This document shows, in pieces, positions 32,307 to 37,476 of a DNA stretch of 64,000 nt (position 1 is its first letter; each line of letters begins with the position of its first letter). The notes under the pieces were generated by a model. The model worked only from the letters and a program-made list of their open reading frames with translations. It was not told the DNA's origin and searched no databases. Location of the stretch: positions 5,890,001 to 5,954,000 of the forward strand of contig OU015569.1 of assembly GCA_907165135.1 (NCBI GenBank), written 5' to 3'. The translations under genes and the position numbers were made by a program. The DNA comes from Oikopleura dioica (Eukaryota > Animalia > Chordata).

Positions 32307-35300
32307 ATGAAGAGAAAATGGCTTATCGTGGGGTTCGCCTCGATGGGCGTCTGCCTCGCTGTGGGACTCGGAGTCGGCCTTGGTGTCGATTGGGACAAGG
32401 CCGACGACGGTGCAATTGACGAAGAGGTCTCTCCGACGCCCTGGGAAGACAGCTTCAGGAACGTGCCAGAAGTACAGTAAAAAATTCCAAAATACGATGG
32501 GATAGTAATCCATTTCGTTCGATATTACATCGTATCATGTGTAACATATGCCATGTCCGCCAACAACGCGTTGAACAAGAATCATTTGTTACTACTCGAT
32601 GCACTCTTTCGATATCATTTGACCACAAATATTTAAATGTTGCTTTGGGAGATAATAATCTGACGCAAGCTTGATCTACGTAAATTCAAAAGAAAACAAG
32701 TAAATACATGATACATGTCTACTAGTGCCGACTGTCTATTTCCCTGTCGAATATAATCCTTCCAGCACTACACAAGGCTTCCCTCTTACGTCAAGCCCAT
32801 CAACTACAACATCGAGCTCTTCCCCGACCCTGTGGCGGATATTTCCTACGGTAGTGAAACGATTACGGTCAATATCGAAAAGCGAACGCAAAATATTGTT
32901 CTTCACGCACTCGCCGACCTGACGACCATCAACGAAGCAACTATTTCTGTCGAACAAGAGGGCCTCTCACCAGTCGTTACCAACACCTTCTACTATGACG
33001 AAAATAGAGAGCAGTTTTTCGTCATCCAATTGGAAAACAAGCTTGAGATCGGCGAGGCGCACATCTATCTCGAGTGGCAAGGGCCTCTTGTCAGTACTCT
33101 TGTTGGAATTAACAAAGTCAACTACAAGGAAACAGAATTAGATATTCTATTTAGATAGCCAACAATTTATCTGGTTTCTTCGAGTCAGTCATTTAAAATG
33201 ACTCATTTTAGTTAGTTTTTTTCTGGATTTACTCATTTTTTTTAAATATTATATATCCACAGTGTGAGCCAAGCAAAATGTATGAGTCTAAGAAATGTGC
33301 ATTCTATAAATAAAGTTTCGTTTTTTTAATTCTGTCAGGATGGTGGTGAGGACCGATACATCATTGCTACAAAATTTGAGCCTACCTATGCACGTGAAGC
33401 GTATCCGTGCTTTGACGAGCCAGCTATGAAAGCTACTTTCAACTTGGCGATGTACCACGAAGAAGGCTACAGTGCTTTGTGGAATATGCCTGTCGATGGA
33501 GAGCCAGAATGTGACTGCGAAGGCTGCAACGCAAGGAATGCGATCAAAATTTCATGTAGATAGTTATACAATTTTATCAAGCGGAGTTCTTCGTATATCG
33601 CAATTCAAAGTTATAAAAAATGCAAAACTGTATTCCAACAATCGCCAATTATGGGAACTTATCAGCCGACGTTTATCTGGCATAAAATGTGCAACGAGTC
33701 CGGAGAAGGCAAAAGAGCTGATGGCACTAAGGTTGACTTTTCTGATGTCTGCAATTTTTTCAAGTTTAATTTTAGATTCCCATCCGCGTTTTCGCAGCCT
33801 GTGACAAGGTGGAGCAAGTTGCGCATGCAATGAAGGTGCAGCAACACGTCACCACCTACTTTGAGGATCTCTACAAACTTCCATATGAGCTTCCTAAAGT
33901 TGACCTTATCGCAATTCCCGATTTCGTAACCGGCGCAATGGAACAGTGGGGACTTATCACTTATAGAGAAACCTCCTTGCTCTATGATTCTGATGCCGGT
34001 GCTACTAGTCTTAAACAGAGCAAATCTTCAACCATTTCCCACGAATATGTGCATCAATGGTTCGGCAACTTGGTAACTTGTAAATGGTGGGACAACATCT
34101 GGATTCAAGAGGGACCTGCTACCTTTTGGTCTCAAGAAGGAATCGAAGAGGCCTATGAAAATGAGCCCTGGGACATGCAAAAACAGCAAATTTACCAATC
34201 AATCACCTACTCGCTCAACAGAGATGTCTCAGTTGCCGGCCGTCCAATCGTTAGCGAAGCTAGAAATCCAGACGAGATCACTGCCGCCTTCGACTGGGTC
34301 ATCTACGACAAGGCTGCCTCGATTATCTACATGCTGCGAGAAGCAATGGGCAAAGACTCTTTCGATAAAGCGACGACTAACTTTCTTACGGAGTTTCAAT
34401 TCAAAGGTGACGTAGAAATAAACTTTGCAGAGAATCAACTATTTCAGAGAAATTTAGAACGTTACTTAAATTGCCCGTCCATACCGAGTAAATTCCTCAA
34501 TACCTCGACTAGTTCTGGACATCATTTTTAAATCTAATGATGATAATTACTTTCAATAGCTGCCGATGAGCTGGACTTTATCACCAGCTACCAAAAACAA
34601 GCGGATGCGGACAACATCATGATCGGGAGCAAAAAGCTCGACATTAAAGCCCTGATGCATCCTTTCTTGAAACAGGCTCTGTATCCACTTCTGACCGCGA
34701 AACTTGACGGGAACAACATTGTCATAACTCAGGGTGGGAAAAAAGAACTTCTCCACGCACTCGCTAGAGGGAATTCTAAAAGGGCGCGCGAGAGGCGCGA
34801 GGGTGGAGCAGCTGAGGCACACGCGAGTAACGCGGTAGGAGATGGGCACACCCGGTAGGTATAATGGAGGTAAGAGGGATTCGCCTGCCCCCAGCGGGTA
34901 ACAAGCCCAACACGGCCGAACTGCCCAACTCTGCGGGAAACAGCGAGGCTCACTGGGAAATCGCTAATCTATCGAGGAAAATCATGATCAGAGGGTAGTT
35001 GCGACGGTCTAGCTAATCTGCACAAGGTTCAATTTTCTGAGGATCATGAGCATTTTTGCTCAAAAATTTTCAGGAAAGATGTGATTTATACTAATTCGAC
35101 AATGGAGATTCCATAAATCACACTTAAAACGTCTAAAAACGTGAGTTTATTCAATAAAACCTCCATCAAAGTTCATCCTATTGTAATCAAATTTTAATCC
35201 AGCTGTCTTGTGATCTTCTCTTCCGTTTGAAAAGTCTTTTTTAATCATCCATCTAATCTCTTATTACCTTTTATCCTTTTCCAGCTGATCTGAGAGACTA

Positions 35301-37476
35301 AAACTTTCCATAAGAACATGATAATTGAAGACGGTGAACCCTATCCAAAGAGGGCGAAAAATCGAAACCAAAATATAAGAGAAACCAGACAAGCCCTTAA
35401 TATTCCCACCCACCAAGACTGAGTCTCAACTTTCAATTTATCTGAAAATCATCTTGACCCGAACTGCCTAACCTTACTGTATGGTATGGACCATATCGTA
35501 TGGTCCATACACCATGATAATATGGTCCAAATTTGATGCTCTGCAACACGAACTACTTCCAGGAATATTCCTCATTGACCTTGTAGATATTCCTTGGCCG
35601 ACATTTTTTGCTCATGATGGGCTACTTAGCTTTAATATTGTCTCCTACATCGTTACTTGCGTGTGCCCCAGCTGATCGATCTCGCTACTCTCGCGCGCCC
35701 TTTTCAGAGCTCGACCAGCGAGTGCGTGGAGAAGTTCTCCTAATCCCTCAGGGTGAGATACTGTCAGTGAAATGCATTGAAAATAAACATTCGCTCAGGT
35801 GACAGACCATTCCTTCACAATGCAGACTCCACGCTCCCAGAAGCTGAGTACAACTTCAAGTACTCGCTCGTTGTAACTTCAAACAACAACGATACGGAAT
35901 GGCTTGATGCAAGTGAATCTCAGATAACACTTCCGAAACCTGCCGGAGATATCCCATTCAAATTAAACTATGGACAGAAAGGATATTATCGAGTAAAATA
36001 TGAAGGAAACGATCGTAAATTACTATCTTCCGGGCCATCACCAGTATCCTCGATGCTCAACTGATAAGATTAGATGATCTTTTTAGGTTGATAGCATTTT
36101 CGATTGTAATTAACAGGTGCGCTTTACACGGAGTTGGTAAATAGTCTTGCCAGTGGAAAACTCGATGAAATGGATCGAATGGGTATTGTAGATGATGCTT
36201 TCAATTTGGCCATCTCTGGAGATATCAGCTACTCAGATGCTCTTGATACTGTGGACTACATCGCTAAAGGAAGTGAAGACTCGTACTACGTCTGGGGAGT
36301 ATTTGGGTCACGCACTTCGTATATGCGCACGATGTTGTCCGGCACCGAGACGGGAGATAAGTTCATCGCATACTTCAAGGTAAGCGCTCTTGGTCGACAG
36401 TTGAGACCTTTCCGGTTTTGGGTCGAGTGTATACCAATTTCGTAAATGTAAGTTTTGAATTGAAACTGACCCCATTGTTTAGAAAGCGGTCAGTGAGCAA
36501 TTCGAGCGTTTTGGATTCGAAGTTAAAGATACCGACTCGCATATTCACAAGTAATGTCCCAAATCTGACCTTGAAAATAGATCTTTCTATAATAGAAAAA
36601 TGCGATCAAATATTGTCTCGCTCTCGGTTTCCTTTGGAGTCGAAGAGGCTGCTGTGCAGGCATCAGCAATCTACAGCGAGTGGAAAAATTCAAACGGCGA
36701 TGTTAGCAAACGACCGCACCCAGACGTTGCTGGAACCGGTACGAATGATAAAATTAATAAAAATGCTGTATCCACCCCTTTAGTCTATAATCTTGGCGTA
36801 TCGAGCGGCAGTTATGAAGATTGGGAATTTATGTACGAACAATACACAAAAGAACTGGTCGCAGACGAGAAGAAAAAATACATGCGTGCTATGGCTGCGA
36901 CTGAAAACGTCACCACAATCGGCCAGGTTCTTTTTTGATCGATGGCCTGAGAAAGAATGCCGCCACTCAATCGGCCGGATAAAAGTATTTTTACGCGCGA
37001 TTAGAAACTGGCCTAATTTTAGAATCTGTCAAGAACCTCAAAAGACTACATGCTCAACACGTTAGCTATGGACAAGACGATTATTCTAGAGCAGGATTTC
37101 TTCACATTTATCAATTACATCTCGTACTCAAGTGTCGGCGAGAAGATGGCCTGGGATTGGGTCAGAGTTCACTGGGCAGAGCTTGTTGAGCGATTCGGAA
37201 CCAACGATAGAAATTTCGGCCGTCTTGCACCCAATATTGCCAATGACTTCAAAACAGGTTAATTCTTCAACTCAATCATCATTGCTGATGCAAGTTTGCC
37301 TAGAGTACGGTCTCTGGTCAGCGGACGATTTCTTCAAGGTAACTGAAGCTGACGCCGGCGCCGGTGAGGGTCCACGAAAATCAACTCTTGCCCAAATCGA
37401 TTCCAATATCGAATGGATCAAGAACTACGAATCTGATATTTTCAATTGGCTAGAAGCTCACGATGCTAGAGAATAA
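32307..37476 (+). CDS. ENPEP: M1 zinc aminopeptidase, glutamyl aminopeptidase (aminopeptidase A)-like, type II membrane protein
   Basis: Signal anchor MKRKWLIVGFASMGVCLAVGLGVGLG; FEPTYAREAYPCFDEP; PDFVTGAMEQWGLITYRE; HEYVHQWFGN; YDKAAS; C-terminal AGAGEGPR..NIEWI typical of ENPEP. Confidence 0.85.
34737..35746. mobile_element. Non-autonomous TIR DNA transposon (MITE, MULE-like), 1010 bp, ~105-bp imperfect TIRs, 9-bp TSD CTCAGGGTG
   Basis: TIRs 34737-34842 and 35641-35746 share perfect blocks AGAACTTCTCCACGCACTCGCT and AAAAGGGCGCGCGAGAG. TSD copies at 34728-34736 and 35747-35755. No transposase ORF inside. Confidence 0.85.
35484..35510. repeat. Perfect 12-bp-arm palindrome gtatggaccata-tcg-tatggtccatac (Oikopleura-type ATATGG repeat)
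   Basis: Arms are exact reverse complements. It translates as WTISYGPY, which I recall from spurious Oikopleura predicted proteins. Confidence 0.7.

Follow-up and report, generated by a model that had tools for sequence, protein, structure and literature searches.

A transposable element across a splice donor of an Oikopleura dioica aminopeptidase gene, and the donor copied in its target site duplication

When the target site duplication (TSD) of a DNA transposon copies a 5' splice site, which donor does the gene then use: the duplicated one, upstream of a 1-kb insert, or the original one, 46 nt from its acceptor? The question is posed by an M1 aminopeptidase gene of Oikopleura dioica, an animal with very short introns and rapid intron turnover, in which the median intron is 49 bp (PMC8008620). 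The gene lies in the 64-kb window analyzed here (C2:5890001-5954000 of the OKI2018_I69 assembly), and one of its exon/intron boundaries carries an insertion of 1011 bp with terminal inverted repeats (TIRs), which we assign to the Mutator-like elements (MULEs). All genome-wide searches were made in this assembly (64.28 Mb, 19 contigs), described as 64.3 Mb in 19 scaffolds from one sequenced male (PMC8008620). The filled site in the Okinawan genome, the empty site in a related lineage and the spliced transcript of that lineage are all in hand, and one step of the model in which transposons build and enlarge introns, the competition of a copied 5' splice site with the original, thereby becomes directly testable. 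The best explanation, to which we give a probability of about 0.6, is that the element inserted across the donor and that the copied donor upstream is probably used to an extent that suffices for a working gene.

The element and its target site

The features at the locus are as follows (window coordinates; P0124 is an O. dioica protein from Bergen).

32307-37461, forward strand: M1 (glutamyl-type) aminopeptidase gene; span matched by the orthologue (tblastn, open reading frames (ORFs) of the orthologous transcript and P0124 against the window)
34560-34733, forward strand: exon 5' of the insertion, ending in ATAACTCAGG; reads ADELDF...NNIVITQ and matches P0124 residues 201-257 (79% identity)
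34728-34735, no strand: left TSD copy, 8 bp, CTCAGGGT; ends in the GT of the new upstream donor (34734-34735)
34734-35798, forward strand: composite 1065-nt intron, from the joined reading frame; its removal is required for the conserved protein
34736-35746, forward strand: 1011-bp non-autonomous element of the MULE family with GGGAAAAAAG at its start and CTAATCC at its end, from genome-wide copies and termini
34736-34842, forward strand: left TIR, about 107 nt, from the inverted-arm analysis and alignment A2
34890-35311, no strand: internal segment (element positions 155-576), common to another repeat family that lacks these TIRs
35641-35746, reverse strand: right TIR, about 106 nt, from the inverted-arm analysis and alignment A2
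35747-35754, no strand: right TSD copy, 8 bp, CTCAGGGT; holds the ancestral donor GT at 35753-35754
35753-35798, forward strand: ancestral 46-nt intron, GTGAGA...CTCAG; a 46-nt intron stands at the same position in the orthologous contig L051 and is missing from the transcript L052
35799-36014 (end approximate), forward strand: exon 3' of the insertion; reads DRPFLHNADS...GYYRVKYEGN and matches P0124 residues 259-327, with a weak ERAP1_C match

An initial annotation had placed a 1-kb TIR element at this splice donor, and the inverted arms, the flanking direct repeat and the family copies elsewhere all bear this out. The arms pair 34744-34801 with 35681-35738 (58 nt, 81%) and 34806-34842 with 35641-35677 (37 nt, 86%), and one TIR 21-mer has exactly two occurrences in the window, inverted relative to each other; shuffled sequence gave an expectation of 0. 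The TIRs are imperfect and the two termini differ (GGGAAAAAAG and GGATTAGGAG). A direct repeat flanks the element on both sides, starting at 34728 and at 35747. Searched at full length, the element has matches at many genomic sites. Its first 110 nt match 23 places in the genome, which comprise seven two-ended copies, four left ends without a partner and five TIRs of greater divergence, and the copy at C2:8383345-8383454 agrees with them at 100% identity.

The family also fixed the boundaries. By script, exact 8-bp TSDs were found in all seven two-ended copies (CTCAGGGT in the window; ATTTTAAC, CTTTAATT, GATTTTTG, AATTAGAC, TGTTATTC and GTTCATTC elsewhere), and GGGA begins 11 of 11 left termini, which together place the element at 34736-35746 and the TSD copies at 34728-34735 and 35747-35754. 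A TSD of 9 bp, as first proposed, was ruled out by comparison of the flanks across the copies: on the left a G takes the ninth place in every copy, on the right five of the seven have some other base, and the two sides match at this locus only because the ancestral intron begins GTG. The six other TSDs are AT-rich, and neither AG/GT nor another splice motif was found in them. An expected enrichment of insertions at AG/GT sites was thus not seen, and judged by its target sites the family is one without genic or splice-site targeting.

The state of the locus before insertion could be read from two sequences obtained by a metagenome scan for orthologous contigs. L051 (Ga0233438_10022670, 3772 bp) comes from a related O. 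dioica lineage and its exons show 66-74% nucleotide identity to those of the window. Its alignment jumps from window position 34739 directly to 35747, and it reads ATAACTCAGG, then GTGAGATACTGTC...CACAG as intron, then GTGACAGACC, that is, a single CTCAGGGT and a 46-nt intron with no element. The second, L052 (Ga0115102_10158161), is 99.5-100% identical to the L051 exons minus nine short intervals, and is therefore a spliced transcript of the L051 lineage; it joins ATAACTCAG to GGTGACAGACC. P0124 reads GNDIVITQGDRPFLHNADS across the same junction (VITQGDRPF), with Gly258 as the split codon. This comparison makes the 46-nt intron the ancestral state and the element a derived insertion of the Okinawan lineage, because the orthologous contig keeps one TSD copy and the 46-nt intron without the element. 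The empty site that had been looked for, with only the 46-nt intron, thus exists, and the GT..AG interval at 35753-35798, begun by the downstream TSD copy, was correctly taken for the old intron.

Some smaller differences between the lineages were also observed. The first 13 intron bases (GTGAGATACTGTC) are identical between window positions 35753-35765 and L051:1575-1587, and the remainder of the intron has freely diverged. The next downstream intron of the related lineage (L051:1786-1915, L052:1880-1970) is apparently GC..AG. The transcript has TAA where the contig has GAA, giving an in-frame stop in the aminopeptidase ORF, perhaps as a polymorphism, perhaps through misassembly.

The host gene encodes an M1 aminopeptidase with a Peptidase_M1 catalytic domain and an ERAP1-like C-terminal domain. 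The exon ORF at 33776-34528 contains HEYVHQWFGN, which carries the HExxH motif of Peptidase_M1. A JGI fragment called glutamyl aminopeptidase (P0004), which carries PF01433, is 90% identical to the 251-aa catalytic exon, and P0124, named glutamyl aminopeptidase in UniRef, carries PF01433 and PF11838 and is 92% identical to the ORF of the transcript. Tblastn against the window recovered the orthologue in all its parts within 32307-37461, each of them open.

Two donors and one acceptor

In the explanation we favor, a MULE derivative inserted in the Okinawan lineage across the last six exon bases and the intron GT of the aminopeptidase gene, and repair of an 8-bp staggered cut duplicated CTCAGG/GT. 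The upstream copy offers the donor AGG/GT followed by the element's own GGGA, and the downstream copy the ancestral AGG/GTGAGA; the two donors are identical through +3 and differ from +4 on, where the upstream one has G and the ancestral one A. Splicing from the upstream donor to the old acceptor at 35798 would remove 1065 nt, including the element, and restore the ancestral mRNA exactly. Searches were made with the separate exons and with the transcript L052; local translation of the two flanking exons showed that joining 34733 to 35799 is in frame (...NNIVITQ-G-DRPFLH..., with a split Gly codon). The frame proposed initially across the 1065-nt intron (ITQ-G-DRPF) therefore holds, and it reproduces the conserved protein P0124.

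Given the conserved protein across the junction and the ancestral 46-nt intron, a productive Okinawan mRNA must, as far as the sequence can tell, join 34733 to 35799. A two-step route was considered, in which the upstream donor is first paired with the acceptor-like CCCTCAG ending at 35751 and the old intron is removed afterwards, and it was rejected as it leaves one extra base and shifts the frame. Direct removal of 34734-35798 is thus, on reading frame, the only productive route. We consider it probable that the upstream donor is productively used.

The main alternative is that we are looking at a damaging, perhaps polymorphic, allele, in which the old donor at 35753 is still used and 1019 nt, the element and one TSD copy, are kept in the mRNA. 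The reading frame would then meet a stop at about 34856 and the ERAP1-like C-terminal domain would be lost, which would be tolerated if the gene is dispensable in culture. We regard this as possible, though rather unlikely. Several observations weigh on its side and against use of the upstream donor. The old donor and its 46-nt intron are fully intact, with the first 13 intron bases the same as in the orthologue; this donor has the better base at +4, where the new one has G for A, and only 46 nt separate it from the acceptor, in a genome with a median intron of 49 bp. Among similar competing donors the acceptor-proximal one is usually favored. In the predicted RNA fold the TIRs pair into a long stem that reaches onto the upstream donor and partly buries it, and retention of the insert does run into a stop, since the read-through frame ends after 34855. 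Moreover, an annotated OKI2018_I69 protein for this gene was not returned by two protein searches able to reach it (length windows 138-439 aa and 337-1071 aa; other OKI proteins were present in the database). Finally, identity between the window copy and its closest sibling is 96-98%, and the two TSD copies at the locus are identical; the insertion is young, and the intact exons carry little weight on function since insertion.

Other observations speak for a working gene. The flanking exons are single-copy: paralogues of both, sought for comparison of intron positions, were not found in the genome. The locus is also hemizygous in the sequenced mature male. Sex-specific regions are haploid in O. 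dioica males (PMC8008620), and a protein named Oidioi.mRNA.OKI2018_I69.XSR.g15878 [Oikopleura dioica] is encoded elsewhere on C2; since C2 is thus XSR and a single male was sequenced, the locus is X-specific and this male would have had no second allele. All exons downstream of the insertion are open, and a divergence of 2-4% from the closest sibling suggests that the insertion is maybe not brand new. As an observation on the annotation itself, the gene at 32307-37461 may be unannotated in OKI2018_I69, fused with a neighbor, or mis-modelled around the insertion.

The predicted stem could also act in the other direction. It is conceivable, although we think it doubtful, that the roughly 100-bp TIR stem loops the element out of the pre-mRNA, leaving about 55 nt at most between the upstream donor and the old acceptor. 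If so, a 1-kb insertion would be handled as a short intron is, in a genome adapted to introns of 50 nt, and MULEs with long TIRs would be intrinsically self-neutralising on or inside short introns, which would give compact genomes a general way of expanding their introns.

Introners and other larvacean introns

With use of the upstream donor, the outcome at this locus would be a potential enlargement of an intron from 46 to 1065 nt. Of the intron gain and expansion suggested at first, the enlargement of an existing intron stands and the gain does not, the intron position being ancestral. What we describe is one well-documented case of a process already known, and it shows neither a new mechanism nor a tendency of the whole family.

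The closest comparison is with introners. Introner transposons reportedly become introns by recruiting a splice site from their TSD (Huff et al., 2016, as cited in PMC9860276). The insertion described here resembles them as a genic DNA transposon with TIRs and a TSD that would supply one splice site, and its excision from the transcript could leave the mRNA unchanged; at the sequence level, the GT of the TSD would restore the mRNA exactly. In introners such recruitment is established, either with one site carried by the element and one from the TSD, or with both from the insertion site (PMC9860276; PMC11282704). Here, in contrast, no new intron position arises, and the existing intron's own donor is duplicated with the old acceptor kept. 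Introners are furthermore expected as many near-identical copies, each forming a lineage-specific new intron, and the family would not qualify: with about 11 copies and no genic or AG/GT preference it is not a high-copy, intron-generating one.

A second comparison is found in another larvacean tunicate, Fritillaria borealis, for which non-canonical introns derived from miniature inverted-repeat transposable elements (MITEs) have been described (Henriet et al. 2019, as summarised in PMC11282704). According to that summary, these too are TIR/TSD elements at intron boundaries; they are abundant, short and species-specific, have non-GT/AG ends and are removed by an adapted spliceosome. The Oikopleura case differs from the introns so summarised in consisting of one 1-kb element with canonical GT..AG boundaries.

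A small Mutator-like family

The element had been called Mutator-like on account of a supposed 9-bp TSD and of long TIRs that start with G. The argument from TSD length was right by luck only; the family assignment itself stands through the transposase remnants in siblings of the element. A 541-aa ORF at C2:8822108-8823727 (L036:109-1731, reverse strand) lies about 120 nt inside a diverged TIR (C2:8823853-8823927), which aligns with those of the family from its terminus inward (alignment A2). This ORF matches the Pfam MULE domain PF10551 with an E-value of 2.5e-4 and 21.9 bits, below the curated cut-off of 27.6, and the same domain was matched by three of five more distant genomic paralogues (E 2e-5 to 5e-4). 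P0001, an ENA protein 55% identical to the ORF, has PF10551 in its precomputed annotation, and the nearest named protein Atlas clusters of the ORF are all MULE (score 0.96, 197 shared features). Pieces of the ORF are found inside siblings bounded by TIRs: residues 1-383 in L032 (73%), 402-529 in L021 (70%), 1-158 in L031, and a short N-terminal piece in L020. The comparison with known MULEs, typically with long TIRs, TSDs of 8-10 bp and a heterogeneous interior between conserved TIRs (PMC5225508), was further in agreement: all seven two-ended copies have a TSD of 8 bp, and the TIRs exceed the 100 bp typical of MULEs (about 107 nt, 81-86% complementary) and are conserved from copy to copy in alignment A2. 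Taken together, the sequence evidence supports assignment to the MULE superfamily, and its most telling part is the set of MULE-domain transposase remnants in siblings that share the element's TIRs.

The hAT and P superfamilies also give 8-bp TSDs, and the 8-bp TSD in 7 of 7 copies is what could be said for placing the element in one of them, which we find very improbable. The TIRs begin with GGG and extend over about 107 nt, where hAT TIRs are short; a hAT or P domain was found in none of the ORFs scanned; and the transposase pieces inside siblings bounded by the same TIRs are of the MULE type, which rules out an assignment from the TSD alone. An 8-bp TSD also falls within the 8-9 bp given by animal MULEs (PMC5225508), a range that holds for all 14 Aedes families described there. 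That there was no insertion at all, and that an old long intron with inverted repeats has an end repeat by chance, has nothing in its favor beyond the fact that a single 8-bp repeat could arise so, and is already refuted by six further elements bounded by the same TIRs, all of them flanked by exact 8-bp TSDs of their own, and by the orthologous locus that precisely lacks the element and keeps one TSD copy.

A search for an autonomous MULE with the same TIRs, as first suggested, led to the 541-aa MULE-domain ORF beside a TIR of the family, which is the only full-length copy of the family transposase and has one TIR only. An inverted partner for this TIR was seen neither within 2.6 kb of the ORF end nor among the 23 TIR matches. 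L032 has both TIRs, yet only residues 1-383 of the ORF. The assembly yielded no intact copy in which both TIRs accompany a complete ORF, and the family may therefore be non-autonomous now in this genome; this concerns present activity and leaves the membership among the MULEs unaffected. About 140 residues of the ORF recur at 99% identity within the annotated gene OKI2018_I69.XSR.g15878, whose 407-aa model has kinesin Pfam domains; either this model is chimeric or a kinesin gene has taken up a piece of the transposase.

With this, a small MULE family with 8-bp TSDs is documented in Oikopleura. It can be compared with the Muta1 derivatives of Aedes aegypti (PMC5225508), which likewise have TIRs of about 100 nt or more, a transposase with a MULE domain and TSDs of 8-9 bp without sequence preference, and which keep the TIRs and subterminal parts around a heterogeneous interior. 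In contrast to Muta1, the Oikopleura family is very small (about 11 left-type TIR ends), has in this assembly no copy that combines the two TIRs with a full-length transposase, has non-identical termini (GGGAAAAAAG and GGATTAGGAG), and subterminal tandem repeats were not noted in it.

The interior of the window copy is of a different kind from its ends. With the family transposase as tblastn query, a transposase remnant was found neither in this copy nor in its closest relatives (L002 and L003). The segment at 34890-35311 is instead 88-95% identical to sequence at five loci without MULE TIRs (L004, L007, L010, L011 and L013) and about 75% identical to paired inverted arms at seven others (L015-L019, L022 and L023), and the interior seems to have been acquired from this inverted-arm repeat. 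A further close copy (88-95%) without a MULE TIR is present at L014. The repeat is a separate family with two inverted arms of about 340-370 nt placed some 300-630 bp apart, either a foldback or a long-TIR element; examples are L015:824-1842, L017, L018, L022 and L023, as well as G000:C5:2124666-2125007 with its partner arm.

Among the one-ended MULE copies, two (L039:3379-5166 and L008:1-1245) are truncated by long terminal repeat (LTR) retrotransposon sequence with reverse transcriptase, RNase H and integrase domains, and several copies of the family sit on C3, a repeat-rich contig of 2.9 Mb.

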